DNA of 63,914 bases, filler included, from Octopus bimaculoides (taxonomy: Eukaryota), in assembly GCF_001194135.2 (NCBI RefSeq). It is 8 parts of 7 records of this genome, joined end to end, with 100 filler letters (N's around TTAATTAATTAA, not from the genome) between each part and the next. Parts side by side here need not be neighbours in the genome. Positions count along the whole stretch, not along the records: positions 43,251 to 56,151 come from NC_068989.1; 7 more parts are not named here. One strand, given 5' to 3'. Of this stretch, positions 22,981 to 56,151 are shown piece after piece. The stretch's first letter is position 1. Each line of letters starts with the position of its first letter. A program made the translations under genes and the position numbers. A model generated the notes under the pieces. It worked only from the letters and a program-made list of their open reading frames with translations, did not search any database and was not told where the DNA came from.

Positions 22981-23119
22981 TATTAAATATTGTCTTTCCA
23001 AATCTTGCTGCATTTCACATAAGATTTCCGGTCTTTTCAGAATAGTCTTTTTCTGTCTAAATTGACCCACCATTTTGTTTGGCTGTAAATTTTGGTGTGA
23101 AAAATTTGACTTGTATCTT

Positions 23120-24284: not shown

Positions 24285-24336
<52 letters not shown>

Positions 24337-24982: not shown

Positions 24983-25033
<51 letters not shown>

Positions 25034-25060
25034 CTCTCTAACTATCTATCTATCACACAC

Positions 25061-25160
25061 NNNNNNNNNNNNNNNNNNNNNNNNNNNNNNNNNNNNNNNN
25101 NNNNTTAATTAATTAANNNNNNNNNNNNNNNNNNNNNNNNNNNNNNNNNNNNNNNNNNNN
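25061..25160. other. Artificial scaffold join (44 N + TTAATTAATTAA + 44 N)
   Basis: Identical 100-bp construct at seven sites; the 12-mer has stops in all six frames. Confidence 0.95.
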
Positions 25161-25198
<38 letters not shown>

Positions 25199-26146
25199 CC
25201 AAAAAGCGAAACTAGACGGGCAGGAAAACTAGAACGGAACATTCGTGGCTTTCTATTCATCAGTCAAGCTTCCAATCATCTTTACAGTTCCGGTCTGTTA
25301 CACTTGATATTATTCAAAATTGGTAGGCCACAAAAGTCTAAGCTAAGCGCATTAAATTTTTGGAAGAAAGTGAGCGAATGTGTGCGACAACACGGACAAA
25401 AAAAAAAAAACGAGAAAATGTTACCCGATTACAAATACAAACACAAGAATAACAATAAGTGTCTTTCGACTAAAAGGACAAGTTAAGTTGAGCTGGCGCG
25501 TGAAGTGGAAGCCTTATATATAGATATAATCGTATTATATCATATTATATTGTATTTCTACACGTGGAATATTATCTAATATATGTAAATAGGATTTGAA
25601 AATATTTGGATTTATCTTTTATTTCGTATCTTTTAACTTTTATTTGTTTCAAATATTGGACTGCGGCCAATTTGTTTTATAAGTCTGTCATTTATTTTAT
25701 CAGTTTCTTTTGCCGAAATGCTAAGCGCCAGGGACATAAGCTTACAACGGTTGTCAAGCAGTAGGGGGGAAAACATAAACCCAAAGACACATACACAGGT
25801 ACATCCCCCCACACACATGCACACACGCAAACACCACACCATACGGGCGCTCATTATTACATACAGGATGGAATTCCACACCGTTTCTGTATATCAAATT
25901 CATAAGGTAATGGTCGGCCCAGAGCTAAGGTAGAGTACACATGCCCAACGGGCTGTGCAGTGGAACTGAACTCGTAACCAAGTGGGTGCAAAGTGAGCTT
26001 CTTAATCACACAGCAATGCTTGGAATTAAACTAAAAGTTCTTGGGAATACTTTAATTTTGTTTATAATTTCTTATAAATTGCAGCAAAATATTCCAAACG
26101 TAGCATGTACACCACTTCTTCTGCTGTTCCATATTTGTTTGTTTAA

Positions 26147-26366
26147 CCTCTTAGCTTTCAGATTACTCTGCTAAACGTTATTCTCGTGTATTCACGTTAT
26201 TTAGAATTTATGATGCATCATCTCGAAGCTTCGAGATTTCTATGATGGGACAGTCAATTTTTATAATGATATTGTAGGGTTGTTGTGAGAGGCCACATCT
26301 GGTAAGTTTAAACATAAAATAGGTGGAATATTTGGGCCAAATATGGCCGGTTTAAATGCTAAAGGG
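26147..26366. mobile_element. piggyBac-like MITE
   Basis: TTAA on both sides (26143-26146, 26367-26370). Short TIRs CCTCTTAGC and GCTAAAGGG. No ORF. Confidence 0.6.
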
Positions 26367-26656
26367 TTAAATTCTTTTAAAGTTATATTTATTTGAAAGA
26401 ACTTGGAGAATAGTCTGCACGGCGGGAAAAATGCCCAGCTATATTTCTTCCGGCTTATTACGATTTGAGATCAAATCTCGCCTCAGTTTCAGGATTGATA
26501 AAATAAGTACCTGTTAAGCACTAGGGTCAGTTTACACACTTCGTTAAAATTACTGGCCTTTGGCCAAAATTAAGGAATTATTGGAAAGGTATGAACTACG
26601 AGAGTTGCAGTTATAACAGAACTGATGGAAAATCTTGTATGGGGATGAACCGACAC

Positions 26657-26712
<56 letters not shown>

Positions 26713-26737
26713 AGCATAAGAAATGCANNNNNNNNNN

Positions 26738-26790
<53 letters not shown>

Positions 26791-27529
26791 AGCATAAGAA
26801 ATGCATGAAAAGGTGTGATGGTGCGTACGTGCATGTGTGTTTTGTATTTGTGCGTGTGGGAGTGAAATGCGATGTATTGATTAAGATCTGAATAAAACTA
26901 GCCAGGTGAGAGAATCAATGGCTATTGTTGGTTGAAAAGGAAGACCAAACATTGGGGGGAGAACCGAATAAAGCGTTTCAAAGAATAGAACGGAGATTAT
27001 GTCTGAATAAAATTCTTGTTTAATTAACTGATGTTTATCCTATAGGTATAGACGAAAATTAATGTATGAAGACATAACTAAAATGTGTAACGTTCCTGTG
27101 ATGAAGTTGATATCTGAAAGAACACAATAAGCACGTAGATAAAGGTAGATAAATATCACCATTAAAGCGAATACAATAACGCCAAACATGTTTTATATAA
27201 GGTTTAAAGATTTATAAATGCCAAGATATAATAAGAGATATAAGCGGTTCTCCTTAACAACGTAATGGAATTTTAAATCTATGATATTATTTTCGATTGA
27301 TTTATCGATTAATATTTCTGATTAATCGATAAGTTTATATAAGGGACTTTATTTATAAGTTTAAAGTAAATTTCACATACGCTCTTACAATTTTACAATA
27401 TCTTCGTGAATCGATAATATAGTATAATCGTATCATATACGCGTTATCGATCACTGCATATACATACACCTCAACGCTCAGAACCCAAAATTATATAGGA
27501 CATATATTACACGCAAATATATATGTTTA

Positions 27530-27571
<42 letters not shown>

Positions 27572-27709
27572 TTGTCTATCTGTTTGTCTGCCTGATGTAT
27601 GAATGTATATGAATATGTATGTATATTTCTCTCCCTGTTACACACACACACACGCACACACACTCACACACACTCACACACACACACACATACATATGTA
27701 TATATACGA

Positions 27710-27900
27710 TACGATTGAACGTTGACTGAACACTATTCAATTTTTTTTCTCCGTGTTTTTCTCCTTGTCTCCGTATTCTTTCTGTTGAAGAGCGTAGCTC
27801 GAAACGTCAAAGACTTTCCGTATTCCCGAGCGTCATACTAATATATACTTTTGTTATTTACACCACCTGTCCTCGTCTGTTGTTATTATTTGTATATTCT
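27710..27900 (+). mobile_element. Probable Penelope-like element terminal-repeat fragment
   Basis: Inferred from the embedded minimal hammerhead motif, which is typical of Penelope pseudo-LTRs. No RT ORF nearby. Confidence 0.45.
27777..27813 (+). ncRNA. Minimal type-I hammerhead ribozyme motif (A6U variant)
   Basis: TCTTT-CTGTTGA-A-GAGC(GTA)GCTC-GAAA-C-GTC-AAAGA: 5-bp helix I, 4-bp helix II, palindromic ACGT helix III, GUC cleavage triplet. Confidence 0.6.
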
Positions 27901-28303
27901 CCCATATATACATACATACATATATATCTATATATATATATATTTATATATGTAGATGATATATTTGTGTGTGTGTATAATGCATATATATATACACACA
28001 TTCTGTAAATAGTAATAATATTTTATAAGCTCAGAGTTTTGAAAGGAATGTGACACCACAACGGCAAAGTATATTGCAAAGAGGGTGGGTGCATCAATGA
28101 ATATACACATTCAATCATACAAACACACACTCATAAACACACACACACATATATAACGAAAGAAAGAAGCACTCAACATATTTGGTTGGAGTTACATATA
28201 TTTAATAACATTTTAACACAGCTCTTCATTACTTTTAGTTTCTTAGGTGCAGGAAACATCCTCATTATCAGTTGTTCAGAGACATTTGAAGCAAGGAGAA
28301 CCC

Positions 28304-28348
<45 letters not shown>

Positions 28349-28385
28349 ACGCGCGCGTGTGTATGTATATATATATATATATATA

Positions 28386-28485
28386 NNNNNNNNNNNNNNN
28401 NNNNNNNNNNNNNNNNNNNNNNNNNNNNNTTAATTAATTAANNNNNNNNNNNNNNNNNNNNNNNNNNNNNNNNNNNNNNNNNNNN
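28386..28485. other. Artificial scaffold join
   Basis: 44 N + TTAATTAATTAA + 44 N. Confidence 0.95.
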
Positions 28486-28769
28486 AAATGGCTGAAGTCC
28501 AAAAGATAGTGCTCATGGGAACTGCCCATATCCTACGTAAAATACTGTCTATGTGATCTCAAATTTTAAAGCAAACATAATTTTCTTATGGTTTCTTAAA
28601 CATTCACTTGAACAAAACTGTACAAATCCAAATATATGGTACCCTAGGCATAACACCTACATGAACTTCTAACTTGTTGTCTCTTGAGGTCTCTGGGTGA
28701 GACTTGGATCCAACTTGTACAAATGCAAAACAAAAGTCAAACATAAAATAATAATAATAATAATAATAA
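28486..28769 (+). mobile_element. Dong/R4-clade LINE 3' end with (AAT)n tail
   Basis: MAEVQKIVLMGTAHILRKILSM* (C-terminus of an RLE-type LINE ORF), 3'UTR, then (AAT)n at 28747-28769. A near-identical inverted copy lies at 63565-63914. Confidence 0.85.
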
Positions 28770-28776
28770 CAATAAC

Positions 28777-30350
28777 ATCTGGGGGCAAGAAGTTTCCCAC
28801 AACCACGGTACTGAGTGGATTCATTCCGTAAGATCCGAACTCTGCCTCCTGGAGATTACACGACAGGACCATGTACGCATAACAACGGAAGATGTCATTG
28901 CACAGGTAGCAAAACTGCCAAACTGGAAAGCCGCAGGACCTGACTGAATTCAAGGCTAGTAACTCAAATGGTTTAGGTCAACACACAAGAGAATTGCGTT
29001 GCAATTAGGCAATTGCTTACAGAGTGGTGTAGTTCCGGAGTGGACGGTAGAGGGAAAAACAACATTGTTAATGAAAGATCGGTCAAAGAGCAATGAAGTT
29101 GGCAATTACTTGTCTTAACCTCCTGTGGAAAATATTAGCAGGTACCCTCGCGGGGACCCTATATACGTTCCTTGCAGAAAACAATCTTCTGCCAGTAGAA
29201 CAAAAGGGAGGCCGAGAAGGATCCAAAGGCAATAAGGACCACCTTGTGATAGACAAGGTTATAATGAAGAACTGTAAACAGTACCAAAAAAACTTATGTA
29301 TGGTCTGAGTATACTTCAAAAAGGACTACGACATGTTGCTGCATTCGTGAGCTTTGGAAACACTCGACATGTGTAGACTAGCTGAGAACGTGTGTGCACT
29401 GATTAAGAACAGCATGCCTAGTTGGAAAAAGAAGTCTTTCATGTAACAGCCAGCACTTAGCCGAGGTAACAATCAAAAGAGGTATCTTCCAGGGAGACTC
29501 TTGTTCACCTCTGTTATTTGATATACCCTTGATCCCACTTTCTGTAGCCCGACGCAAAGTCAACGCACACTATGAGCTGAGGAAAAATGGACCTCATCTC
29601 AACCACCTTCTCTTAATGGATGGTTTAACACTGTTCGCAGAAACAGAGCCTGAAATGGAGAGGCTGGTTGAGAATGTGCAAATGTGCAGCAAGGATATAG
29701 GGATGGAGTTCGGTATCTTGAAGTGTGCGGTGCTTACTTTGAAACGGGGGAAAAGAGTAAATTTTAGGGGCATAGAATTGCCAAACGGAGAGAGAATGGA
29801 AGACCCGGATGATGATGGGTGCAAGTAGCTTGGGATCCTGAAGCTGGATAATATCTTGCATTAAGAAATGAAAGACAGAAATGAAAGGCATATTTCAAAC
29901 GCCTTAAACCTCTCTTGAAATCAAAATTCAACTCAAGGAACCTTGTGACTGCCATCAACATATGGGCGGTTGCTGTAGGCCGCTATAGTGCATCCATCCT
30001 GAAATGGACACAGGCGGAGATTAACCAACTCGACCGCACTACACGAAAAACAATGACAATGTATGGTGCCCTCCACCCTAAGATGAATGTACATAGGCTC
30101 TACATGAAGAGGGGTAAAGGTGGGCGTGGGCTGATTAGCGTACGGGAGTGCATCAACAGTGAAAGAAGAAACATGACAGAATATTTGGTAAACAGCAAAC
30201 AAGACCTGCTACAGTATGCTGCTAATGCAGAAGGATTTAACAAAAATGGACTTGAGAGTGCTCATGAATTCCAATCAAGAACAGCCATCGAGAGAGAAGA
30301 ATCCCTACTCCGCATGGAATTATATGGTCGGCTCCACCGTGAAGCCAACA
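28777..30350 (+). pseudogene. Dong/R4-clade LINE reverse transcriptase remnant
   Basis: Motifs NWKAAGPD, ITCLNLLWKIL, LPVEQKG, KDHLVIDK, NHLLLMDGLTLFA, FGILKCA, NSRNLVTAINIWA, RLYMKRGKGGRGL, broken by stops and frameshifts. Confidence 0.9.
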
Positions 30351-30526
30351 AATTAAAAGAGAATAGTACTCTTCTTTTAATTTTGACTCTATATCTTCTG
30401 AAGGAGTTACTTCAATCCTTTATATATTAACCAAAATGAAATAGATTGACAAAATTATTTTTTTAACCTGTGAAGACACACGAGATGTCGAAATATCGTT
30501 CACTAGATGACAATGGCACTCTTCTT

Positions 30527-30527
<1 letters not shown>

Positions 30528-30603
<76 letters not shown>
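30528..30603. repeat. (AAT)n microsatellite
   Basis: Read directly from the sequence. Confidence 0.95.
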
Positions 30604-30604
<1 letters not shown>

Positions 30605-30692
30605 GTAAAAACAACAAGAATAACAAGAACATCAACAATAACAACAACAACAAGATCAATAGTATATTCATATTTCTTTCACTCTTTTTCAG

Positions 30693-30722
30693 ATCCTCAA
30701 ATGTTTGCCAAAATTGGTGACG
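30693..30722 (+). CDS. Candidate 30-nt microexon of an unidentified gene
   Basis: Acceptor TTTCTTTCACTCTTTTTCAG and donor G|GTGAGT. Phase 1-1 reading gives DPQMFAKIGD; phase 0 gives ILKCLPKLVT. No homology recognised. Confidence 0.4.
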
Positions 30723-31144
30723 GTGAGTTTTTGATTTGTTTTTTAATTTGCGTTGTTTTTTTTTCTTCTTTTCGTATTTTTACCAGAAGTGGGGCCTGTA
30801 TGTTATTGTTGTTTTTTTCTTATCTTATATGTATTTAATGAAGTGAAATATGAATAGTTTTCATTTAACACCTTCGATATTGATGAATGTTTTTCAAATT
30901 ATTTCTGAGATTTACAGGACTAAATTCTTTCATTATTCTTTTGCTAGTTTCAATCTTTGGTTTCCGGTAGCCGTGTTGTGGCCCGGATTTCGAGTGTTTT
31001 GTAGAGTGTTTTGTAGAGTATAACGAACCCCAATACGATACAATTCTATGCATACATGTACATATATGTAAATTTATAGGTATGAGTTTATATATGTGTA
31101 TACAGTCAGACAGACAAGCAGGCAGACGGATAGACGGGCGGGCG

Positions 31145-31234
31145 GACAGACAGAGGAGCAGACAGTCAAACAGATAGAGAAGCAGAGAGCCAGACAAACA
31201 GACAGACAGACAGACAGACAATCGGACAGGCAGG

Positions 31235-31265
<31 letters not shown>

Positions 31266-31474
31266 GTAGGCAGACAGGTAGACAGATAGATAGGTAGGTA
31301 GGTAGGTAGGTAGGTAAAGAGGTAGGTAGGTAGGTAGGTAGGTAGGTAGGTAGGTAGGTAGGTAGGTAGGTAGGCAAGTAGATAGGTAGATAGGTAAGTA
31401 AGTAGGTAGATAGATAGATATATAGATAGATATATAGATAGATATATAGATAGATATATAGATACATACATACA

Positions 31475-31508
<34 letters not shown>

Positions 31509-31530
31509 CATACATACATACATACATACG
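31145..31530. repeat. Compound tetranucleotide microsatellite (GACA, GGTA, GATA, CATA)
   Basis: Read directly from the sequence. Confidence 0.95.
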
Positions 31531-32140
31531 ACGAATTACCACTCAATTACTGTCCAACAAATATCATCGCAAGGCAAGTATTGGTCTTTATGAGACTCTG
31601 ATAGAAGACATTTGCTCAGAGTGCTACACAGAGGGTTCGAAACTTGATCCACGTGATTGCGATGCGAACATCTTAACCATATAGGCATGCCTAATCCCAT
31701 GGAGATATATATACATATATATTCCAGAATATTCTCAATTACACCCTTTAATATATATATATATATATATATATATTGCTGTAGTGTGAGCGTGTTGTAG
31801 TATCTATGAACGAGAAAAACTATAATATAAGTATGTAATTGTTGTTGTTTAGTTCAAGGTTAATTCTGGCGAAGTAGATCGATAAGATGATCGGCTTAGA
31901 TGGATCAATAGAACGTCGGACAAAATTCCTAATGATATTTAATAATGACATTTTAGCATCTGACTTCAAATCCTTCCGAGGTCGAGAAAGTAAGGCCCAA
32001 GTCAAGTACTGGGGTTCGATATATAAAACTCCTGTACTGCATTTTGGATTAAACGAAGACAACTCAAAATATTCTAGTTGTGACCGTCTGGTTCCCTCGG
32101 CCTACGTTAACTAATGTGTTCTGAGTTATTTTCTAAGCTG

Positions 32141-33563
32141 TCAGGTCATCCCATAAGTTCTGTCCGAATTTTGAATAAAGAAAACAAGTGATCAAATGTT
32201 ATATTTAATTGAAATTTAATCATCAATGTACTTTCCCTGATTATTTATGATTTCCTTCCATTATTTACAAGCTTTTTAATCCCATCAATGTAAAACTCAT
32301 TTGGTTTCAAAGCGAAGAACTCTGAAATGTCAGTTTCGACCTCCTCCTGGCTTGCGAAAGTTATGTCCCCCAAATGATTCTGTTAACTACGAAACAAATG
32401 GTAGTTTAAAGGAGCAAGCTCGGGAGAATAAGGTGGATGAGGATTTTTTTTCCCAACCAAGCTCTTCGATCTTCTGTGATGTGATCTTTGCAGTGTGGGG
32501 TCGCGCATTGTCCTGATGAAATATCACTCCTTTTCGGTTCACTAAAGCGGGTCTTTTTTTCTTCAAAGCTTGGTTCAAACGCTCTAATTGCTGACAGTAG
32601 ACTTGAGCATTGATTATCGCATTAGGTGGTAACAATTCAAAGTGAATTACTCCTTTGTAATCCCACCAGAAGAACCATTTTCCCATGAAGTTCCCTTCTC
32701 GGTTGTGGTTGAGCGTTTTCCCTTTTACCAAGGCACTGTTTACACCGTTTAACATTTCGATAGAAGATCCATTTTTCGTCACCAGTTACAAGTCTATCCA
32801 AAAAGGGTGAAATGAGTTCGCGAGAATGGAGAGAAGAGCAGATGTCAACTTCGGGATTTGCGGTTGCTTTCGGACAATTCATGAGGCATCCATTTTCCAA
32901 GTTTAGGAACCTTTCCAAGTTGTTGAAGATGACGATGAACAGTTGTATGGTTCGAACTAAGCTTTATTTCCAATTCTTCAACTGATAATGCAGGAGTTTC
33001 TTCAAGTAATGCCTCAAGGAGCTTATCATCAAACTCAACTGGACGTCCTGTTCGATCTTCATCCTCAANNNNNNNNNNNNNNNNNNNNNNNNNNNNNNNN
33101 NNNNNNNNNNNNNNNNNNNNNNNNNNNNNNNNNNNNNNNNNNNNNNNNNNNNNNNNNNNNNNNNNNNNNNNNNNNNNNNNNNNNNNNNNNNNNNNNNNNN
33201 NNNNNNNNNNNNNNNNNNNNNNNNNNNNNNNNNNNNNNNNNNNNNNNNNNNNNNNNNNNNNNNNNNNNNNNNNNNNNNNNNNNNNNNNNNNNNNNNNNNN
33301 NNNNNNNNNNNNNNNNNNNNNNNNNNNNNNNNNNNNNNNNNNNNNNNNNNNNNNNNNNNNNNNNNNNNNNNNNNNNNNNNNNNNNNNNNNNNNNNNNNNN
33401 NNNNNNNNNNNNNNNNNNNNNNNNNNNNNNNNNNNNNNNNNNNNNNNNNNNNNNNNNNNNNNNNNNNNNNNNNNNNNNNNNNNNNNNNNNNNNNNNNNNN
33501 NNNNNNNNNNNNNNNNNNNNNNNNNNNNNNNNNNNNNNNNNNNNNNNNNNNNNNNNNNNNNNN

Positions 33564-43250: not shown

Positions 43251-43577
43251 AGCAGCCTGGTTTCGAGAACATCAGGAATTTTTCGAAATTTTAGAACTGT
43301 ATAAGAAATTCATGAAGAAAAATCTAAATTTCGAATATCTGAATATTAAAGTTATAAGTTTTAAAATAGTTAAATGTATTGAAATTATGTTTGATAGTAT
43401 TTTAGCTTTACATTAATTTAATGACAAGATAGAAACAAGAAATTGTATATTCTAATCAATGTCCATAAAGGCATAAATGACCTAAGTAAAGTGAAAAGGC
43501 GGTCGCTAGGAATCAGAATCGAAGTAAGGATACGGTTCATTAGTGCAAATTATGTAACATTAAACAACCATGCTTAC

Positions 43578-44249
43578 CTTCACAATATTTTCCTTTAAAG
43601 TTAAGTGGGCATTGGCAACGGAATTGGTTGGCATTTTGGATGCAGGTTCCTCCGTTAAGACAAGGGCGAGACGGACAATACGGTGGAGTACGTACAGTAC
43701 AAATAGTGCCAGACCATCCATTAACACACTTACAATTGAAGCCATATGGTCCTAATCTGCTACACTGGCCGTTGTTTTGACAAGGATTTGGGGTGCATAG
43801 ATTGATTACAACCTCGCATATCTGTCCAGTCCAGCCTGGTGGACAGTGACAAGTAAAGCTGTTTCCGTTAGGATAGCACTGTCCACCGTTCAAACAGGGG
43901 CTACCTGAACAAGACGCAGTGGGAATCGAACAGAGTTTACCAGTCCAACCTTGGCGACATATGCAAGTGATTTGATTGTTTACTATCTGACAAAATCCAC
44001 CATTTTGACAAATATTTGGTGAACAAACTGCTTTTTCACATCGTCGTCCTGTGAATCCAATAGGGCAATGGCAAGTGAATTGAACTCCACTTTGATAGCA
44101 TGTTCCTCCATTTTGACAGGGTGAGGTTTGACAGGAAGTAGTGGGATGTTCACAACGAGCACCGTAAAAGTTAGGAAGACAATGGCACATAAATGAGGTT
44201 CCCGCATTCGAACATTGACCACCGTTCATACAAGGTGTTGACGAACATG
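43578..44249 (-). CDS. DSL-EGF cassette 2: 672-nt exon with 6 EGF repeats
   Basis: Acceptor TTCTTTCAG, donor AAG|GTAAGC, phase 1-1, open frame ACSSTPC...KGKYCEG. Paralogous to 51237-52238. Confidence 0.9.
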
Positions 44250-45807
44250 CTGAAAGAACAAGATTCAAAACAAAATAGGATAAATTAACAGAATTAATCT
44301 ACTTAATTTACTGTTTAATAAAACAACATTCACTAAATCCATAAATGCCTTACTAAAGTACAAACGCAGAAAAGATTCAGTTTTGTAAATAAGATAATAT
44401 TGTGTGTGTTTTTCATTTTGTTCTAAATTACAACTTGGTTGCAATGCTAGCACACTTAAGACGTCTTATAACTAATTATAACTATGGCAGACCTGTTTCC
44501 TACACTATTATCGTTATTGAGTAAAAATCACTATCCGATCAGTATGATTGATTTACAATTACTAATTTAGCCTACAGGTCATCTACAAAATGTCAACAAT
44601 TATTCTCAAATAGAAATGTAATTAAGATAAAACATTTGATAACAGAAATAAAGATGTATTAAGTAAACGACTGCCAGACAACTTAATAATAATATATTTC
44701 ACTTCGTTTTGTGATTTTTGTGTTTTACTTTTCTAAATATCTTTTTGTACCACGTAATCCCAATACCGAAATTAATATACAATGCGGTATTCAATGCAAT
44801 TGCGAATATAGGCTTTATTTGTTGGTAGAAATTTGGTTATGTGAGATCCAGATATCACTCAGTATGGAATGTGTCTCCCATATCTATGTTGGATACCATT
44901 AATCTCTGACTTCTTTGGATGCTTATAGATGTATTTCAGCTTATTAGAAATCTTCAAATCTCACCGCTTGCTAGTTCGTTTTAGCTGAAATAGTGAAATT
45001 CTTAACTTGCAAGATGAATCTTCTTCCTCACATCTCCGAGTTGCACACGTGTCATGCTCACGTGTTCCACTTTAAATCCCGCTTCTACCTCTTAAACCCA
45101 ATCAACATATTACAAAGAGTAATTATAAGGACTATTTACCTCACCAATGTTAAAGTGCTATACACTAATCCCTCTAGCGAATGGTGGAAATCCACGAAGT
45201 ACGAGCAGTACTGTATATTTATAATATTATTTTTATAATTTGTATATATTTATTTTATAAATGAATTTATGTTGTAAATGCAAAAACAACACTACGTTAG
45301 CTTAAATAATAAACTGTAATAAACTGTAATAGGTGAACGACGATATGGCGAGAAATTACTGTATTATTCATTTAAATGCTTCGCTGTAAATAGGTATTAT
45401 GTAGCAGTGTAGGTTTCTGTTGTAAGGAGCAGGAGCCCTGTATAACAAGGAATGTTCTATTTGCTTGCAATTATGTGCGTCTGTCGTGATTACAGCTCAG
45501 ACAGACGTTTTTTTTTTAAACAGTAGATAATACATCCTTGATTAATGCAACAGTCATGAATAATTAAGGTATTTATGGTGGTAAAAAATTGATTGGATGA
45601 CTGATTTTCGATGACTCAGTTTTAGATCACCGGGAATCTAAAGTGTGAGTGAGCAAATTCGATATAATCGAAGTGCTAGCTAACCCCATAGAAAATCCAA
45701 GGCCGAAATTGGTCCACATTTTATTGGATCCAGGAAGCCAAAGGGAGAACTGATCTAGGCGGGATTTGAATTCATGATGTAAAGAGACAGAAATAATATA
45801 CACGTAC

Positions 45808-45870
45808 CATCGGCATTGCAGAATGGACCAATTAAACCAGGCTTGCAGACTTTTTCACCTTCAGAATTAC
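45808..45870 (-). CDS. DSL-EGF cassette 2: 3' part of the DSL exon (5' part lost in the N gap)
   Basis: (C)NSEGEKVCKPGLIGPFCNAD, donor ATG|GTACGT. Paralogous to the end of 55469-55613. Confidence 0.85.
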
Positions 45871-46875
45871 NNNNNNNNNNNNNNNNNNNNNNNNNNNNNN
45901 NNNNNNNNNNNNNNNNNNNNNNNNNNNNNNNNNNNNNNNNNNNNNNNNNNNNNNNNNNNNNNNNNNNNNNCAGCTATCAAGAAGGTAACTACTGTCTTTT
46001 ACAAAAAATGTAAAACACGATGAACAGCAAAAGCTTCCTCATAACCAAATTGTTCTGTTGTGGTTATGAAGCCTCAAGTCAGTCCTCATCCAGCAGACCA
46101 AGAACTAAAAACATTCCAGCTACACTTGACAAGTTCTTTGTTAAGACAATGCATATCTAGGACTAGACTGCATTGTTCAATATTTGCTTCCTCGCATTGA
46201 ATAATGTAATTTGAGAGAGATTTAGTGCCTAACAGTGGGAGCTTCTATGTTGTCAACTAATTGTATGATGGAGGATTCAAAATTATAACTGCTTATATAT
46301 TTAAAACCGTCTGTATAGTATATTAAAGTGTATTGAGAATAAATATAGAGTAAGTGTGTTCAAAATACATATCATCGTGTGATCCCAGCACTGGTTCTGA
46401 TATTTATGTGACAGTGAAGAACCCACAAAGAAAACTTGATTGGAAAGGATGGGAAAATATATAAAGAGAAATAAAGGCAAAAAAAACAAGAAAAAAACAA
46501 AGACATACTGTTAGAATTAGCCTGGTAATTTGTTTATTTCATTTTCATAGCAATATTAATTCATCTAATCTGAAATGGGTTCTGTTGTTTCATTTATTGG
46601 ATATGTAGTACATAAATTTGGTTGCAAATGCTTCCAGAAGAATTATGACAAAGAACCACAGGATAAAGCATATGAATTAGATAGAAATATTAATACATTA
46701 ATGATGAAGCATATATATGTATGTTTACTGAGAAAATAATCGCAGTAGAAAACCGATATTCCTTAATATATGTGAAAAAAATTAAAACCGTTATTAACAT
46801 ATGGTAGAATGGATTCTTCATATTCTCATACTGTAGGGGAAATTATTTGGAATAACTGAAATTCTGTTTCCTTGT

Positions 46876-47051
46876 TTATTTTCCAAAATTACAGTTGGCT
46901 CTGTATTGCCAATCACACACTTTCAAGACATTGTTGAAGTGCAAGTTTCCAGGGCAATCCTTTCTGTAGGCAGTACTCCAGTCACACTGATAAAAATGTC
47001 TGCAGCTTTGTGGGTCAGGGAAAAGACCTGTAGGTTCAGGACATTTGAAGC
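46876..47051 (-). CDS. Terminal exon: chitin-binding type-2 (CBM14/peritrophin-A) domain
   Basis: Acceptor TTTTTTTTCTTTTTCACAAG, phase 1. GFKCPEPTGLFPDPQSCRHFYQCDWSTAYRKDCPGNLHFNNVLKVCDWQYRANCNFGK* shows six-Cys CBM14 spacing with conserved aromatics. Confidence 0.92.
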
Positions 47052-49139
47052 CTTGTGAAAAAGAAAAAAAATGTAAATAAAATTGATTTTTATTACAAGT
47101 GTCGAATAAATGAATGTCAATTATATATAACTGATGATTAAGTAAACATTTATCGATGATCACATTTATCTAATTGATGATACTGGCAACATGAGGTGTG
47201 TGTATATATGTATGTACATATGCATAGATGTACATATCTATATATATATGTATCTATGTGTGTGTGCATGCATGCTTGTGTCTCCACGTTTTGCTACTGC
47301 ATGAATGTTATACATGAGTGCCACTTTCATACAAGAAGTGTTATTCATTTCCAGTATCCTGTGAAAACATGTCTGGCTGTCAGGAAATATTATTTTACTT
47401 GGAGACAGGAGTGGGTTGGCAGCAAAAAAGGTTTTGAGCTGTAGAAAATCTGACAGATGCAAGGTCTAATCTACCTGCCTGACCTATGCAAGCATGGAAA
47501 AGGGGATGTTAAAACAATAACGATGAATTGCTTTAATTGCTTTTGGAAATCCAAATCATTTCGTAAGAGAGACTGGTCCCTTTTTATCCCTTTGAAAATA
47601 CAAACAATTCTACATAACAACATGGATGTTCATTACACACGGATGAAGCTTAATGATCAACACACACACAAACACACGTACAAGTGTGTATTAATCAGAA
47701 AATAATGCATAATGGCTGTGTAAGTTNNNNNNNNNNAATCAGAAAATAATGCATAATGGCTGTGTAAGTTCCATACACTGAAATGAGTATAAACACCACA
47801 AAAATAAACCAAATAAAATCATCTTCGTCAACTCGTCATCTCAATTCATTTAAATTAGTGTTTCTCAACTAATCTCCGTCTATGGACCTTCTAGATTCCT
47901 ATTTCATTCAGGTGGACCCTGACAAACATTTGATGTTTAAAAAATCCTATTATATTATTATCATTAAATGATATTAGAAATTATATAAAATGATTGTTAA
48001 GATATTTTGGGCATTGTAGAAATATAACTGATTTATTGCACATAAATTTTAACAACAGAATCATATATGGACTCTCAAGGGTTATATGGAGTCTGGTTGA
48101 GAACGACTGATGAAGATAAAACAGGAGGAAGAGTTAAGCCATCTTAGTCAGTGACTAAAATATATTTGCATATTCATTGAAATGACTTGGGAAATTTCAA
48201 AATGAATATATATTTTTCTTTTCTGCCTCTGTGTTTAAAAAAAAATTATTAACTTTATAATTTTTGTGAACAGTATTTTGATAGTGAAACCTTTTAACCA
48301 AAACATACTAGCTGTCAGTATCAGAATAGTTGGTCAGAACGTTATATTTCTTTCATATTTAACCCCCCTCCCCACATGACCCCATTGTAAAATGATTACA
48401 CTCAACAAGAATCTTTTAATCTAATCAGCAGATTTATTATCAGAGTGTTAGCACTAAGTAGTGTTTAGGTATAAATAGGTAGTGACATATTTCAACTGCT
48501 AAAAGGCAAATACACTGCTGTTACCGTGAAGAACATATCTTTCTTATGGTAAAAACACGTGAAAATACCCGGTTCATTCAGTGTCATTATCTAGTAGGAA
48601 TCCAAGACACTAATGTTTCAAGCTTCTTGGCTCTTGTTGGTGAGATGTACCTTAGAGAGGCAACACTGCACGAACGTATAAAGCCATAGTTCTATGTATA
48701 ATCCAGTCAACACGACTGATTTGCCCTAGCAGATCACCCAATCGAGGTAAATAAATTTTTAGCATTAAGCAGTGTTTAGGCATAAGCAGAATGTAGGTTA
48801 TTTGAAATATGTTGAAATCTATTATTAATCCCCTACCGCTCTGTTTTATTCGTTTTGCCATACCATACATCAACTCGAATGTATTTACATCTTTGTTCAG
48901 TATGCTTCATTATCTCATCTGTTTGAATTTTTCCTCTTAATAGATTTACCTCAAGAGAATCATCTGTTTGTTGAATGCCCAGCTTGAAGGTACTAACCTA
49001 AAATCATTTAAATTCATTGAACTAATGACACTCTATTTTCTCAATTCTCAGGCAGGTGAAAACGGTGCTCTAAATGGTTATTGGCAGGGCAGTTTTTTCC
49101 TATTCTTATCACGACATTAAAAAATTGGTATTATTTAAT

Positions 49140-50064
49140 TCTTTCACCCGCACGATTTTAACTAAGAAAAAGGAAAAAAGTCGGAATTTTTTTTGCATGG
49201 AATTTAGTACCCTAACCTCCTAATATGCTGCAAACCCTTTATTTTTGTTCAGACAAAAAGGAGTGGGGGACCGGACAACCTCCCCCCCCCCATATATCGG
49301 AATCATTGGAATTTCTTTTTTCTGTTGAATGAATTCCGGTGACCTCCTAATATCCTACAAAACCCTTTTTGGGGTCCGGAAAACGGGGTGGCGTGAGGTG
49401 GAAGCCTCGGGAATTTCAGACCCTCCACGCACTCCCACCCCCATTGATCTTTTCACCCACACGATTTTCACTAAGAAAAAAACTCAGGTTTTTTGCGTGG
49501 AATCAAGTACCCTGACCTCCTAATATGCTGCAAATTCCTTATGTTTGTTCGGAAAAAAGGGGGTAGGAAAAAAGATAATTTTGTTTTAATATTACACTTT
49601 TACTTCGATTCACACATACAAGCAAAAACTCTAACGTTTTTTTTTTTAGATGAATTTATCGTTCGTTATCTCTCCGCACACTTCATTACCACTAACTTCT
49701 ATAACCTCTACAGTTTCACTTATTCATTTCAACAATCAATGTAGTTCACACTCTCTCGAAAACGTATTTCTGCAAAATATTATCTAAAATGATTGGTGAA
49801 GAAAGAAATAGGCTTCCATCTAACCCCATCTCGTTTTCCGGACCTAAAAAGGGTTTTGTAGCACATTAAGAGGTCACTGGAATTCATTCAGCGAAAAAAA
49901 AAAATCCAATGATTCCGGGATATGGAGGGAAGTGTCCGGTTTCCCCACCCTTTTTCCGAACAAAAATAAGGAGTTTGCAGTATATTAGGAGGTCAGGGTA
50001 CTTGATTACACGTAAAACAATCCGAGTTATTTTTTTCCTTAGTGAATATCGTGCGGGTAAAAGG
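49140..50064. mobile_element. Foldback element with ~245-bp inverted arms inside the EGF-CBM14 intron
   Basis: 49140-49385 is the reverse complement of ~49826-50064. A third partial direct copy lies at ~49443-49565. Confidence 0.75.
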
Positions 50065-51236
50065 AGCGAAATTTACCAAAAACTTTACTCATGTGAACGC
50101 ATAATCATTAAGGTGCGGGTGGTCAGTTTGAAAACCGCCAGATGAAATGATCAGAATAAATGTTAATTATCTCCGCAAATCAAATAGGGAAAATGCTGAA
50201 ATTTAGCAATAAATTAAAGGTACTGTACTTATTTGGCTGGTGGACTGGTACTGCAAAAGAATAATATAAATCAAAAGTCATATTAGTTTCATTTATACAC
50301 ACATACGTACGTACACACACAAACACATAACACACTACTAACATAAAATTACATGCACTCATATTACCCAGTAAACGAAGTTTAGGTGATGGTTTCATGA
50401 GATGAAAACGGTCATAAACCTAGTAAGTCTCAAAACTGGGAAACGTTTTTAACTAAGATTAATCTTGGATTAAGAAGCAAAATTTCCTCCACTAATATCT
50501 AAAATAAAAAAAAAAAATTTTTAAATAGTAAGGGAGAGAACTCCAATAGCTGCAAGTCTACCGCTGGTATTTGTTTTAGCATGCGGAATGCTTCCCTGAT
50601 ATATTTCCGTTAGTTCCTTTAATACAATTAACTTGGTATATCTGTTTATTGCATTTATGAGTTCTATTCTTATTCAAAGCAGCAAGACAATTTTAAAGTT
50701 CAATGGAGGCAAATTTTTCCAGCAATATTCAAATGAAAGGTTTATACGTGCAATAAACAAAAGCGATTTGAATTAGTCGTTTTCAGAGGCTGGAAGAAGG
50801 TAATGACCGACTAAGCAGCCTGGTTTCGAGAACATCAGGAATTTTTCGAAATTTTAGAACTGTATAAGAAATTCATGAAGAAAAATCTAAATTTCGAATA
50901 TCTGAATATTAAAGTTATTATAAGTTTTAAAATAGTTAAATGTATTGAAATTATGTTTGATAGTATTTTAGCTTTACATTAATTTATGACAAGANNNNNN
51001 NNNNNNNNNNNNNNNNNNNNNNNNNNNNNNNNNNNNNNNNNNNNNNNNNNNNNNNNNNNNNNNNNNNNNNNNNNNNNNNNNNNNNNNNNNNNNNNNNNNN
51101 NNNNNNNNNNNNNNNNNNNNNNNNNNNNNNNNNNNNNNNNNNNNNNNNNNNNNNNNNNNNNNNNNNNNNNNNNNNNNNNNNNNNNNNNNNNNNNNNCACT
51201 AGTGCAAATTATGTAACATTAAACAGCTATGCTTAC

Positions 51237-52238
51237 CTTCACAATAGGTTCCTTTAAAGCCAGGTAGGCATCGGCAACGTAATTGGTTGGCATTTTGGAT
51301 GCAGGTTCCTCCGTTAAGACAAGGGCGAGACGGACAATACGGGTTTGGAATACGTTCAGTACAAATAGTGCCAGACCATCCATTAACACAATTACAAGTG
51401 AAGCCATTTGGTACCGAGCTGCTACACCGGCCGTTATTTTGGCAAGGATTTGGGGTGCATGGATTGGTTCGAATGCCGCATGTCTGTCCAGTCCATCCTT
51501 GTCGACAATTACAAATAAAGCTGTTTCCGTTAGGATAGCACTGTCCACCGTTCAAACAGGGGTTACTCGAACAAGATGTAATGATATTCTGACAGTTTTT
51601 ACCAGTCCATCCTTGGCTACACACACAAACGTAGTTAAAATTGTTTTGTACAAAACATTGGCCATTATTATAGCATGGTTTTGAAGCGCAAGGATCTCTT
51701 GTCGAACAATCTCGACCACCAAATCCTTGAAGGCAGTCGCATATTCTTGTGTTTCTATTACAAGTTCCTCCATTTTGACATGGTGGATAACATTGAATCG
51801 CCACCTGGCATCTATCACCTTCAAATCCATTGAGACATGTGCAAGTGATTTGATTGTTTACAAGCTGACATGTTCCACCATTTTGACAGATATTTGGTGA
51901 GCAAAATGGTTGTTCACATTGTCGTCCTGTGAATCCAACAGGGCATTGACAAGTGAATTGAACTCCATTTGGATAGCATGTACCACCATTTTGACAGGGT
52001 GAGGGTTGACAGGAATTAATGGGAATTTCACATCGTGTACCAGTAAATCCAGGTTGGCAATAACATTTCGCAGCAAAGTTAGTTATAGCACATCGGCCAC
52101 CATTTAGGCAAGTCACCGACCGACATTTATCTGAAAATTGACAACGATTACCGTAAAAGTTAGGAAGACATTGGCACACAAATGAGGTACCTGCATTCGA
52201 ACATGTACCACCGTTCATACAAGGTGCTGACAAACATG
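51237..52238 (-). CDS. DSL-EGF-CBM14 gene: 1002-nt exon with 9 EGF repeats
   Basis: Acceptor TTCTTTCAG, donor AAG|GTAAGC, phase 1-1, open frame, nine six-Cys EGF modules. Confidence 0.95.
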
Positions 52239-52494
52239 CTGAAAGAACTAGATTCAAAATGAAATAAATAAAATAAATTAACAGAATAAATCTACTTAAT
52301 TTGCTGTCTAATAAGACAATATTCGCTAAATCCATAAATGATATATATCAAAATACAAACCCAGAAAAGATTCAGTTTTGTAAATAAGTAAATGTGTTTC
52401 TTTTTTCATTTTGTTCTAGATTACAAACATAGTTGCAGTGCTAGCACATTAAAGACATCTTATAGCTATATCTAAGGTAGACCTCTTTAATACA

Positions 52495-52799
52495 TGTGCG
52501 GACAGGATGCCGAATGCACTTTTGCCAAAAGACAAGTATCCGAAGCCAAGAATGCTGAATGAACTCAATGTCGAACGGACATAAAGCCGAACTGACACAA
52601 TAATAAAAAAAGAAAACATTTATGCCTACATAGTTTTCTTACCAATTCACTAATTTGGCACCTATTTAACGAGATTAAATTTTAATTTTTGTATGTCTTT
52701 TCGACATCTTGTCCGTTCGGCTTTACGTCTGTTCGGCATTGTGTCCGTTCGGCTTCTTGTCTTTCGGCAAAACTGCATCGGCGTCTCGTTCGTGTACTG
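52495..52799. mobile_element. MITE with 9-bp TSD (Mutator-like) and GCCGAA/TTCGGC subrepeats
   Basis: TTTAATACA at 52486-52494 and 52800-52808. Inverted arms. Absent from the paralogous intron near 44490-44510. Confidence 0.75.
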
Positions 52800-53870
52800 T
52801 TTAATACAGTATTATATTTATTGAGTAACACTCAATATCTGATCAGTACAATTGATACAATTACTAATTTAGCTTACAGGTCATCTACAAAACGTTAAAA
52901 ATTGTTCTCAAATAGAAATATAGCTAAGATAAAAACAATTGAAAATAGAAATAAAGTTGTATTAAGTAAACGACTGCCAGATAACTTAAGAGAGATTATA
53001 TTTTCTTTATTATCTTAAATATGATTTGGCGATGACAACCTGTTAGAAAGTGAGAAATGTATTTCACTTCGCTTGAATGATTTTTGTGTTATACTTTCAT
53101 AAATATTTTTTTATACTACGTAATCCCAATGCCGAAGTTAATATACGATGTGGTATTCAATGCAATTGCGAATATAGGTTTTATTTGTTGGTAGAAGTTT
53201 GGTTATGTGAGATCCAGATATCGCTCAGCATTGAATGTCTCTCCCATATCTGTGTTGGTACATCTTTAATCTCTGACTTCATTGGGTGCAAATAGATGTA
53301 TTCCACATTATTAGAAATCTTCAAACCTAACCACTGCTTGGTTCCTTTATAGCTGAAATAATTAAATTTTTATCTTGCTTATGTGTTCCACTCCAAATCC
53401 TGCTTCTACCTCTTAAACCCGTTCTACATATTGCAAACAGTCATTGTAAGGACCATTTGTCTCACTAATGTTAAAGTCTCTATATTAGCATCATCCTTTA
53501 TCTTCTAGTCTGAGACGACCATATCGCTTACAGACTTCGTTTTCCAACAAAATAGACAGGTCACACATTTTTAGGTGGTTTTATATTTGAAGAAGGAAAA
53601 TGATTTTAGTAGAAAGATATTAAAAAGTCTAACATATTTCTAATTTGAAATTGAAAGAAATTCATTTAGATAAGTAAATAGATCGTTACAAAGCTACTGA
53701 AATAATTTATATTCTTTTCTTATCTAGGCACATATATTCAGAGACAGTTGGTATTTCTCAGTTTACCATGGAACTTGACGGTTAAATTGTTTGCAATACT
53801 TACCTTGGTGAAATGTTTGCATTACTTTATTATAGTAATGTAAATTCAAATAGAAATTCATGATTCTTAC

Positions 53871-53984
53871 CATTCTCGCATCTGGATCCCGTATAACCAT
53901 ATGCACATTTGCAGTGATAGCCATTAATTTCGTCGACGCACGTACCACCATTTAAACAAGGAGCCTGTCTGCAGTCGTCGACGC
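53871..53984 (-). CDS. DSL-EGF-CBM14 gene: calcium-binding EGF exon
   Basis: TTTTAG acceptor, ATG|GTAAGA donor, 114 nt, phase 1-1. [38 protein letters not shown] contains the C-x-D-x4-Y-x-C hydroxylation motif. Confidence 0.93.
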
Positions 53985-54661
53985 CTAAAATAAATCAATA
54001 TTAACCCATTTTTTCACTTCGTTAATCTTTGAAAACTCATTCCAGTTAAGAACATCACAGGTATTGCAGTATCATGCATATTTAATAGTTTGTTTCTTTT
54101 AGGGACTAGTATTAATACCTTGTCGAAGCAGTTAAATCTAACCTGTTTAAATAACAGTAAATTGTTCGACATTTAAATGCATATCTACTTCTAAATGTTT
54201 ACTTCCATTTATTTTAACGTATTAATTATCCACTCATATCTACATGTTATTAATCAATCTAGAACAAGCTATTAACTTTCAACTAGAGTAATAACGTAAC
54301 AACTCAACTATGATAAGCTTTTGAACTTTCACTTCCAACGAATTATTATTGTCCATTTAAGCAAATGACCGAAATAATCTACAAGCATTATTTGGAATAT
54401 TTTTGAGGAGATAAATAACACACCAGCAGGTGGAATACATGTAGAACCAGACGACATGTAATATTAAATATCTAATGTATTTAAAAGTGCAAATCTGAAC
54501 GTACATATGTTAAAGTTGTCCACGTTAAAAAGAGTTTATTCTATGAAATGGATTCAATTAACAACATCGTTATAGCTAAAATAAAATAGACATTGATAGT
54601 TTCGCGAGTATTACGAATTCCTACAAATAAAGTAAACAAATTAACAGAAAACAGTAAATAC

Positions 54662-54772
54662 CTCTAATACAAGTTTTTCCTGTGTATAACGGTTTGCAGG
54701 TGCATCTGTACGTAGAGCCCATTGAGATACAAGTTCCACTGTTTTTACACGGTGCGCTGCGGCATGGATCAG
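54662..54772 (-). CDS. DSL-EGF-CBM14 gene: first EGF exon
   Basis: TTTTTCAG acceptor, GAG|GTATTT donor, 111 nt, phase 1-1. [37 protein letters not shown]. Confidence 0.9.
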
Positions 54773-55468
54773 CTGAAAAAAATATTGTCGATACATGTCT
54801 TTTGCGCACATATTTACTTTCTATTTATTTAAATTATGAAATTCGGTCAGAATGAAAATGAATCAGCTACATTAATTACAGCAATGTATTTACAATCTCA
54901 CAAAAAGAGAACTTGTATTCATTTTTTTCAGAGATTTACCTGCTTTCTATTGAATTGAGCTGTTGCGAATAGAGTCGAATCCGTGTCAGTCCACAAAGAT
55001 ATTCAACTCTCATCCATTTATATGCTTCGCTATAAATGGGTAATATGTTGAGATGTAGTTTTCTGCTTTAATCGCAGGAGCCCCGTAAAGCAACGAATGA
55101 TCTGTTTGCTTGCAATTATGTGCGTCTGTCGTGACTACAGCTCAGACAGACGTTTTTTTTTTAAACAGGAATTAATCCATCCTTGATTAATGCAACAGTC
55201 ATTAATAATTAAGGTAATTATGGGGGTAAAAAATTGATTGAATGACTGATTTTCGATGACTCAGTTTTAGATCACCGGGAATCTAAAGTGTGAGTGAGCA
55301 AATTCAAGATAATCGAAGTAATAGCGAATCGCAATGAAAATACAAGGCCAAAATTGTTTTAGGAGGAAATTGGTCCACATTGTATTGGATCCAGGAAGCC
55401 AAAGGGAGAACTGATCTAGGCGGGATTTGAATTCATGATGTAAAAAGACAGAAATAATATATACGTAC

Positions 55469-55613
55469 CATCGGCATTGCAGAATGAACCAGTGAAACCA
55501 GGCTTGCAGACCTTTTCACCGTTAGGACCACACTGAAACCTCGTTTGCTCGCTGATGGGAATATAACACCTGATGGCACAGTTTGGACCATAGTAGTCTT
55601 GGCTGCAATAGCT
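55469..55613 (-). CDS. DSL-EGF-CBM14 gene: DSL (Delta/Serrate/LAG-2) domain exon
   Basis: TTTCAG acceptor, ATG|GTACGT donor, 145 nt, phase 0-1. SYCSQDYYGPNCAIRCYIPISEQTRFQCGPNGEKVCKPGFTGSFCNAD matches the DSL pattern C-x3-YYG-x2-C-x3-C...C-x3-G-x3-C-x2-G[WF]-x-G-x2-C. Confidence 0.88.
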
Positions 55614-55763
55614 CTGAAATAAAACAATAATAAAGACATTCTAAGACTTTAGAAAATTGAACAGTTAAAGATGATTTCCGATATTTTGATCCCAAACAGA
55701 CTGTTTTAAAAGTATAAACGTTTGTAGCTTTGGTGTACGAGGTTTTAATAATTGGCATGGTAT

Positions 55764-55983
55764 AAGGTGGCGAGCTGGCAGAATCGTTAGCACGCTGGAC
55801 GAAATGCTGAGCGGTACTTCGGCCGTTGCTACGTTCTGAGTTCAAATTCTCCCGAAGTCGACTTTGCCTTTTATCCTTTCGGGATCGATAAATTAAGTAC
55901 CAGTTCTGTACTGGTGTCGATCTAATCGACTGGCCCCTCGTCCCAAATTTCAGGCCTTGTGCCTATAATAGAAACGATTAATT
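55764..55983 (+). mobile_element. tRNA-headed SINE family A
   Basis: Complete head, core and CAGGCCTTGTGCCTAT tail. Confidence 0.9.
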
Positions 55984-56151
55984 GGTATGGTATTAAGACT
56001 GCATGCTCTTCCATAATGAAACCGATTCTAATGCTGTTTAAACCGCAATATGTTCATAATAACACTATGGCTTGCCGGTTATTGACTGTGGTGTACTTAG
56101 AAGCAAATGCAGTTAATAGTTACGTTAATAACAGAAATTACTAGCTTCGCG

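Follow-up and report, generated by a model that had tools for sequence, protein, structure and literature searches.

What kind of protein is encoded by a gene that begins like a Notch ligand and ends with a chitin-binding domain? The question is raised by a locus of Octopus bimaculoides in a window of 63,914 nucleotides (nt), filler included, which joins eight parts of seven records of assembly GCF_001194135.2 end to end; coordinates without a further label count along this window. The piece concerned, 43251-56151, is CM046609.1:17,549,092-17,561,992. Working from the DNA alone, the original prediction had joined five minus-strand exons with canonical splice sites, between 46876 and 55613, into one frame reading DSL, EGF, calcium-binding EGF, nine more EGFs, CBM14 and stop. 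All five exons lie where it placed them and form one frame of 515 amino acids, and Pfam returns the same domain order (PF01414, EGF, PF01607). We call this gene A; it is a member of a tandem, octopod-specific, fast-evolving cluster of secreted mosaic proteins.

Exons and predicted product of gene A

The first exon of gene A in the piece, E1 (55469-55613, 145 nt, phase 0 in and phase 1 out), encodes the DSL domain, E2 (54662-54772, 111 nt, phase 1-1) a single ordinary EGF, and E3 (53871-53984, 114 nt, phase 1-1) a single calcium-binding-like EGF; all three have AG/GT flanks. E4 holds nine EGF modules in a single exon, with an open frame and 54 cysteines. Its extent was originally given as 51237-52238 (1002 nt), and with the acceptor that its orthologs use it becomes 51237-52247, because two AGs stand 9 nt apart at 52238-52255 (TCTAG followed by TTCTTTCAG). 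Both acceptors keep the frame; that at 52238 yields the 515-residue product, and the upstream one at 52247, the orthologs' choice, gives the junction ENVLSACLS and a product of 518 residues. The true acceptor of gene A is probably this one, 9 nt upstream of that first proposed. E5 (46876-47051, 176 nt, minus strand like the others) has a phase-1 acceptor, encodes the CBM14 (peritrophin-A) module, and ends in a TAA stop at 46876-46878.

Each of these exons has counterparts in related octopus genes. The peptide of E2 is 82% identical to residues 214-253 of an O. sinensis protein (P0007), and the counterpart of E3 lies at positions 24650-24769 of the O. sinensis locus (L001; 86.8 kb, zero N). By tblastn E4 shows 66-74% amino acid identity to an O. 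bimaculoides paralog (P0001), with long stretches of exact match, and E5 is 79-88% identical to the C-termini of P0001, P0004 and P0007.

The two terminal domains are recognized with high significance. E1 alone matches the Pfam DSL profile PF01414 with E = 4.9e-11 and 43 bits (cut-off 24.2), and CBM_14 (PF01607) is matched with E = 1.9e-13 and 50.8 bits (cut-off 22.1) over profile positions 1-53 of 53; between them Pfam finds 11 EGF stretches. In phmmer comparisons with solved chitin-binding modules, the CBM14 of E5 matched a chitinase (6g9c, 1.1e-11) and tachycitin (1dqc, 2.7e-7), and also 8in3, 4zce and 6so0. The module (CPEPTGLFPDPQSCRHFYQCDWSTAYRKDCPGNLHFNNVLKVCDWQYRANC) has six cysteines in the peritrophin-A spacing C13C5C9C12C7C, and the aromatic residues F55, Y56, W60, F74 and W83 are invariant across the family alignment. 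A structural model of DSL-EGF1-EGF2 made with AlphaFold2 (AF2; mean predicted local distance difference test, pLDDT, 73) gave generic matches to the EGF rods of Notch, DLL and JAG proteins with TM-scores of ~0.3-0.37, and is neutral for the DSL call.

Canonical ligands of this type end in a transmembrane (TM) segment and a cytoplasmic tail, on which their ubiquitin-driven endocytosis depends; both had been predicted to be missing here. We found no TM segment in the gene A product, whose highest 19-residue Kyte-Doolittle mean is 0.74, and the frame stops right after CBM14, leaving no room for a tail.

The exons for the signal peptide and the C2-like MNNL domain had been expected beyond 56151, and they do lie upstream in the same chromosome record. 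They could be placed through a RefSeq protein of O. bimaculoides named 'delta-like protein 1' (P0135, 184 residues), which contains an MNNL domain (PF07657) and whose DSL domain is identical to that of E1. In its locus (L003, CM046609.1:17550382-17585751, 100% identical to the piece where the two overlap), the signal-peptide exon occupies positions 10001-10057 of L003 and two MNNL exons positions 15499-15690 and 18213-18293. A fourth upstream exon of the family, for residues 111-166, was not found in L003; judged by position, it most probably falls in a gap of 1134 N directly adjoining the end of the piece at 56151. The full layout is thus signal peptide, MNNL, DSL, 11 EGFs, CBM14 and stop, the first two lying beyond the piece. 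As read from its exons and domains, gene A encodes a secreted MNNL-DSL-EGF11-CBM14 mosaic protein that has no membrane anchor.

At the 3' end of E5, an AATAAA hexamer overlaps the stop codon (46868-46884, GGAAAATAAACAAGG), an arrangement shared by O. sinensis; the hexamer may be the polyadenylation signal of a transcript with a very short 3' untranslated region.

Octopod relatives and the E4-E5 junction

Searches with the full 515-residue model retrieved relatives from three Octopus species, under a variety of automatic names. In O. bimaculoides these are XP_052826417-19 (842 residues, fibropellin-1-like) and XP_014781344-46 (UniProt A0A0L8GGG7; fibropellin-1 or Delta-like protein), in O. sinensis XP_029641279.2 (763 residues, neurogenic locus notch homolog protein 1-like) and XP_036362564-71 (protein jagged-1b-like), and in O. 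vulgaris CAI9727904-14, from the submitter's genome annotation. In all of them a signal peptide is followed by an MNNL-like domain, DSL and EGFs, and CBM14 stands at the C-terminus. A TM segment is absent throughout the family, the full-length relatives being hydrophobic only at the signal peptide, whereas the canonical Delta of O. sinensis has one.

Maps of XP_029641279.2 on L001 and of XP_014781344.1 on its own locus (L002) gave the exon plan of the family: one signal-peptide exon, three MNNL exons, the DSL exon, one to four single-EGF exons, one multi-EGF exon, a microexon, and the CBM14 exon. Gene A follows this plan, with the microexon present as a relic, and also has positional orthology on its side. 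XP_029641279.2 is its positional ortholog, with 81% amino acid identity and colinear introns, and joins the same exons into signal peptide, MNNL, DSL, 13 EGFs and CBM14. The O. bimaculoides paralogs XP_052826418.1 and XP_014781344.1 share both the architecture and the exon plan, and belong to the same chromosome cluster. Gene A differs from its relatives in having 11 EGFs, against 13 in the ortholog and 6 to ~16 among the others, in a linker microexon that is disabled here and used in most of them, and in a locus that is annotated as two truncated genes.

The junction between the last EGF and CBM14 deserves particular attention. Relatives insert a linker microexon of 15-18 nt between the multi-EGF exon and the CBM14 exon; the O. 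sinensis microexons at L001 28503-28517 and 75109-75129 encode VPDQGS and VPDPQAS. In gene A the corresponding sequence (50233-50250, minus strand, TACCAGTCCACCAGCCAA) has an intact acceptor and a donor changed from GT to AT, and use of the next downstream GT would break the frame. Because the microexon donor is lost, direct joining of E4 to E5 is the sole in-frame join at canonical sites. Isoforms without the microexon are annotated in O. sinensis (P0130, P0004). An O. vulgaris model (P0134) opens with an out-of-frame reading of the last-EGF exon joined directly to the CBM14 exon, and is therefore a third annotation that uses a junction of the E4-to-CBM14 type. The same model continues into the MNNL exons of the next unit, spanning tandem paralogs by read-through or as a chimera. 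A protein homology search with the last two EGFs plus CBM14 returned no match, and hence no transcript-derived protein spanning the junction; a like search with the MNNL-DSL head returned two matches only.

The piece contains three runs of N (45871-45970, 47727-47736 and 50995-51196), all intronic or intergenic for gene A, so that none of its exons in the piece is hit. The 202-N run at 50995-51196 begins 41 nt downstream of the E4 donor, in the E4-E5 intron. Its flanks are 127 nt apart in the first O. sinensis unit, 118 in the second and 108 in copy B, the neighbouring paralog described below, and the run stands for ~110-130 nt of intron. The 10-N run (47727-47736) lies in the same intron between flanks that are colinear with O. 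sinensis, with little or nothing missing. From 55905 to 45971 the window is colinear with L001 from 22732 to 32496, at 81-92% identity and through both intronic gaps. This colinearity with an independent, gap-free assembly supports both the order in which E4 and E5 stand and their orientation.

Two other ways of parsing the region were rejected. E5 is not taken as a separate, nested gene, since it lacks both a start codon and a signal peptide; its phase-1 acceptor also falls exactly on the domain border, and relatives splice their CBM14 exon to an EGF exon. A single long gene in which E4 runs on into the neighbouring copy is countered by the conserved stop in the CBM14 exon of relatives, and by the third gap (45871-45970), which in O. 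sinensis corresponds to ~37 kb with the 5' exons of the next gene.

How widely is the architecture distributed? Against 1.84 billion representative proteins, a profile of MNNL plus DSL retrieved the Octopus family at E ≤1e-82, followed by a 93-residue fragment from Argonauta hians (1.6e-24) and, below it, only generic Delta-type proteins from 3e-17 down. No member outside octopods emerged from this search, which found the family only in Octopus and Argonauta, and among 281 proteins fetched CBM14 was restricted to the Octopus members. The DSL-EGF-CBM14 family appears to be confined to octopods. The best of the generic matches were cnidarian proteins with 4-11 tandem DSL domains (P0139 and P0140 of Nematostella; P0142, P0145), one of which carries the RefSeq name 'protein draper'.

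The original prediction had known of no described DSL-EGF-CBM14 protein. That holds for the searchable literature, in which we found no paper describing such an octopod protein, and papers on the matrix proteins of the argonaut egg case and of mollusc shells make no mention of one. It does not hold for databases: RefSeq and UniProt entries from three Octopus species (XP_014781344.1 / A0A0L8GGG7, XP_052826418.1, XP_029641279.2) already show this architecture, some of them predicted as early as 2015. What is undescribed in the literature is the fusion of DSL with CBM14 and the expanded family; the ingredients, secreted DSL-family proteins and CBM14 matrix proteins, are known.

The name fibropellin borne by some entries comes from the sea-urchin fibropellins, which are likewise secreted and have many EGF repeats. 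In fibropellins these repeats are flanked by a C1s-like domain at the N-terminus and an avidin-like one at the C-terminus (PMC10336842). Pfam finds neither a C1s-like nor an avidin-like domain in the gene A product, and neither is in the Pfam lists of P0001 and P0002, which hold EGF-type and DSL domains only. The name is misleading because both flanking domains are missing, and membership of the fibropellins is rejected on the same ground.

A chitin-matrix role and its alternatives

If gene A is a secreted mosaic, what might it do? We favor, with a probability of roughly 55%, an extracellular matrix protein anchored to chitin. The CBM14 tail would fasten the protein to chitin, for which the beak, radula, sucker or gut cuticle, stylet and egg envelope are candidate sites. 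The disulfide-locked EGF string would act as a semi-rigid spacer, its length varied by gain or loss of whole EGF modules (6 to ~16 among paralogs), and the MNNL-DSL head, instead of acting as a canonical Notch activator, would bind at the opposite end to membrane lipid, or to some other partner in the matrix or on the cell surface. The family most likely originated from a Delta-like gene in which the TM and tail exons were lost and a CBM14 exon of phase 1 was captured; duplication in tandem and gene conversion would have come afterwards.

Known matrix proteins supply parallels to both halves of this proposal. A six-cysteine module like that of gene A is found in peritrophins, the C-terminal modules of chitinases, tachycitin, the mollusc proteins Pif and BMSP, and squid beak proteins, none of which is fused to DSL as gene A is; the squid beak protein DgCBP-3 (7bwe) in particular matches the gene A CBM14 with E = 0.61 only. 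Octovafibrin (XP_014771937.1) of O. bimaculoides egg tethers is a load-bearing protein with 29 EGFs flanked by lectin domains (PMC10336842). Like the gene A product it is a secreted EGF string capped by carbohydrate-binding domains; it differs in being the product of a separate gene, with C-type lectin ends instead of MNNL-DSL and CBM14. By this analogy octovafibrin would be the nearest functional counterpart.

The rate at which gene A evolves bears on its function. Rates were estimated from aligned codons of two sequences, gene A and its O. sinensis ortholog. Identity is 81% in amino acids, 89.8% in nucleotides of the aligned codons and 82-89% in introns, so that the exons are no better conserved than the introns. 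The ratio of nonsynonymous to synonymous substitution rates (dN/dS) is 0.77 over all aligned codons and 1.0 without the cysteine codons. All 78 aligned cysteines are nevertheless identical; the chance that 78 would survive at the rate of the other residues is ~3e-8 by a rough estimate (0.8^78). The gene is therefore maintained, with constraint essentially on the disulfide scaffold only. By segment, dN/dS is lowest for DSL (0.40), 0.7-0.8 for the EGFs and 1.23 for CBM14, the first and last values having large errors because they rest on 48 and 58 codons.

This pattern would also suit a chitin-recognizing protein of defence or reproduction, whose CBM14 senses the chitin of fungi or parasites, or an egg or sperm envelope, and whose variable EGF and DSL domains form an interaction surface under diversifying selection. 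Pointing that way are the tandem cluster, gene conversion, the gain and loss of modules, a dN/dS of ~1 outside cysteines, and the elevated value of the CBM14 exon, from few sites. CBM14 domains, moreover, occur in immune-related lectins such as tachycitin. Against this, a spacer with unconstrained loops predicts the same pattern of rates. We consider the defence or reproductive explanation unlikely, though the likeliest among the alternatives to a structural matrix protein.

The other obvious candidate is a Notch ligand. The MNNL-DSL profile of the family matches the solved modules of DLL4 (4xl1, 5.8e-13, residues 6-194), JAG1 (4cbz) and DLL1 (4xbm), so the head descends from that of a real Notch ligand, and the cysteine spacing of the DSL domain (C8C3C11C7C8C) is identical to that of 12 canonical ligands. 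Gene A thus shares with the Delta, Serrate and Jagged ligands an MNNL domain followed by DSL with the same cysteine spacing and then by EGFs. It is unlike them in its C-terminal CBM14, the lack of TM segment and tail, the lack of DOS-type EGFs at positions 1 and 2, a replaced DSL face, rapid evolution and tandem expansion. The face of the Jagged1 DSL domain that binds Notch comprises the conserved residues F199, R201, R203, D205 and F207 (PMC3415683). At these positions gene A has R, Y, P, S and Q, so that five of five are replaced; the 12 canonical ligands, octopus Delta included, retain RDDxFGH(Y/F), where the octopod family has IPIxEQxRF. EGF1 and EGF2 score as ordinary EGF/hEGF and not as the DOS type, which is known in Jagged, Delta and DLL1 and absent in DLL3, DLL4 and the C. 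elegans ligands. PF21700 (EGF_DL_JAG) reaches 19.9 bits (cut-off 27), at residues 393-418, away from DSL. Octopus also keeps a canonical membrane-bound Delta ('delta-like protein D', P0092) with a TM segment at ~566-590. Canonical ligand function is doubted because the DSL face is changed, DOS EGFs and an endocytosis tail are missing, and a canonical Delta is retained; judged by sequence comparison, a Notch-ligand reading of gene A is weak.

Could the head still bind Notch on cells that touch chitin? As a matrix-presented agonist, the protein would draw from its chitin anchor the resistance that ligand endocytosis usually gives; as a soluble decoy, the free protein would block the receptor. 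The head is homologous to the receptor-binding MNNL-DSL of DLL4 and JAG1, and immobilized ligand ectodomains do activate Notch, the need for force having hindered soluble agonists (PMC8391929, PMC12953149). Secreted DSL proteins serve as ligands in C. elegans, and some, such as DSL-1, resemble gene A in having neither membrane anchor nor DOS motif (PMC3415683, PMC2504490); DSL-1 is unlike gene A in having only one EGF, in lacking a chitin-binding domain and in being a genuine LIN-12 ligand, and the two have no demonstrated relation beyond the DSL domain. DLL4, too, functions without a DOS motif (PMC6986876). On the other side stand the five replaced face residues, set against the motif that all 12 canonical ligands keep, a dN/dS of ~0.8-1.0 and a variable EGF number, both unlike a conserved receptor-ligand pair, and the membrane-bound Delta that octopus retains. 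We therefore regard agonist and decoy alike as clearly unlikely.

The original prediction had proposed a secreted ligand-like protein tethered to chitinous matrix, as an agonist, a decoy or a co-opted structural linker. The linker fits best of the three; agonist and decoy are weakened by the DSL face, the ordinary EGF1 and EGF2, and near-neutral evolution away from the cysteines.

A chitin-anchored matrix protein has its own weak points, which together count against it. An AF2 model of the last EGF with CBM14 has a pLDDT of 47, which is low confidence. The high dN/dS fits a structural spacer and just as well a protein of immunity or reproduction that is under diversifying selection; gene conversion between paralogs may distort the ratio itself. 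The E4-to-E5 join in gene A is put forward from comparison with relatives, and one MNNL exon is concealed by an assembly gap. The annotation on the assembly, finally, splits gene A in two: the 184-residue 'delta-like protein 1' goes from the DSL exon to an odd terminal exon (54544-54618), and a 369-residue product takes in E4, its last exon being a small one at ~50470-50497. These models occupy L003 10001-29441.

Such a split would be expected if gene A were not expressed as modelled, either as a decaying duplicate or through other small terminal exons, so that the paralogs alone make the full protein. The products ending at 54544 and 50470, the lost microexon donor and the high dN/dS would all agree with this. 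It is, in our judgment, very unlikely, since none of the five exons has a broken frame or a lost AG/GT site and the 78 cysteines have survived; isoforms that skip the microexon occur in O. sinensis (P0130, P0004), and the two breaks in the annotation adjoin assembly gaps, the 1134-N gap just upstream of E1 and the 202-N gap just after E4. Least likely of all, given the replaced DSL face, is that the altered head still engages Notch or another receptor with EGF repeats on epithelium apposed to chitin, with CBM14 replacing endocytosis as the resistance to pulling; if true, it would be natural matrix-tethered Notch activation, an octopod invention diversified by tandem duplication.

The tandem cluster and its meaning

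Gene A is not alone in the piece. Part of a second tandem paralog, gene B (copy B), which the original prediction did not mention, occupies 43251-45870. It comprises the 3' part of a DSL exon (45808-45870, minus strand, ending in EGEKVCKPGLIGPFCNAD with a GT donor), which is cut by the 100-N gap at 45871-45970, and a six-EGF exon (43578-44249, minus strand, 672 nt, open, 36 cysteines). The gap separates gene A from this next paralog; in O. sinensis ~37 kb lie between its flanks (L001 32496 and 69986), and it probably hides the 5' exons of copy B. Counterparts of E2 and E3 are missing from gene B, which lacks ~1.7 kb relative to the second O. sinensis unit. Compared with gene A, its identity is 83-93% at the DNA level and 76% at the protein level, and its deletions take out whole EGF units in register. 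The AG of the upstream E4-type acceptor is lost (TCTTG), so that the downstream AG must serve. Given an identity of only 83-93% and the different EGF content, copy B is rejected as a haplotype duplicate.

One stretch stands out from this level of divergence. Positions 43251-43429 and 50814-50994 (~180 nt) are 98-100% identical, whereas neighbouring duplicated DNA is only 83-92% identical, and the second of them ends exactly at the 202-N gap; the near-identity reflects a recent gene-conversion event or else a collapse of the assembly at the end of a contig. In the paralog P0001, 420 of 842 residues lie in exact matches on L003, with long stretches shared with E4 of gene A, whereas its identity to gene A by tblastn is 61% in the DSL exon and 79% in the CBM14 exon. 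The ~180-nt near-identity and the exact matches to E4 together point to gene conversion.

In O. sinensis the cluster has at least four units, all in the same orientation. It sits within the span of a kinesin gene on the opposite strand (L001 1900-86846; Kinesin, FHA and KIF1B domains, 979 residues); no kinesin exon was seen in the piece of the window analysed here.

Repeats account for some of the intronic sequence of gene A. The E3-E4 intron contains a tandem repeat of 16/32 nt at 52699-52769 (TTCGGCATCTTGTCCG-like, 2-4 copies), and the E4-E5 intron a block of short repeat units at 49125-50079, with three direct copies of ~79 nt starting at 49189, 49316 and 49489 and inverted copies at 49810-50020. 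The block looks like a cluster of insertions resembling short interspersed nuclear elements or miniature inverted-repeat transposable elements; it has no match in Rfam or Pfam. An Rfam scan of 43251-56151 found no RNA family, and Pfam found no match in ten intronic or antisense open reading frames of the piece.

For genome annotation, the family is a source of misleading names. Fibropellin, jagged-1b-like, notch homolog 1-like and delta-like 1 would each lead an inventory of pathways astray, and counting the members as Notch ligands or receptors would inflate the number of Notch-pathway genes in cephalopods. A small chance remains that gene A is a chitin-tethered Notch ligand; if true, this would be relevant to the source of the force that Notch activation requires. 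As a clean instance of domain shuffling, the family would represent a developmental ligand gene that lost its anchor, gained a phase-compatible chitin-binding exon, and expanded in octopods. If the chitin-matrix role is true, the family is a candidate component of the chitinous structures of octopus, whose protein make-up is poorly known, and would be the second case in octopus, after octovafibrin, of EGF strings that serve as mechanical elements.

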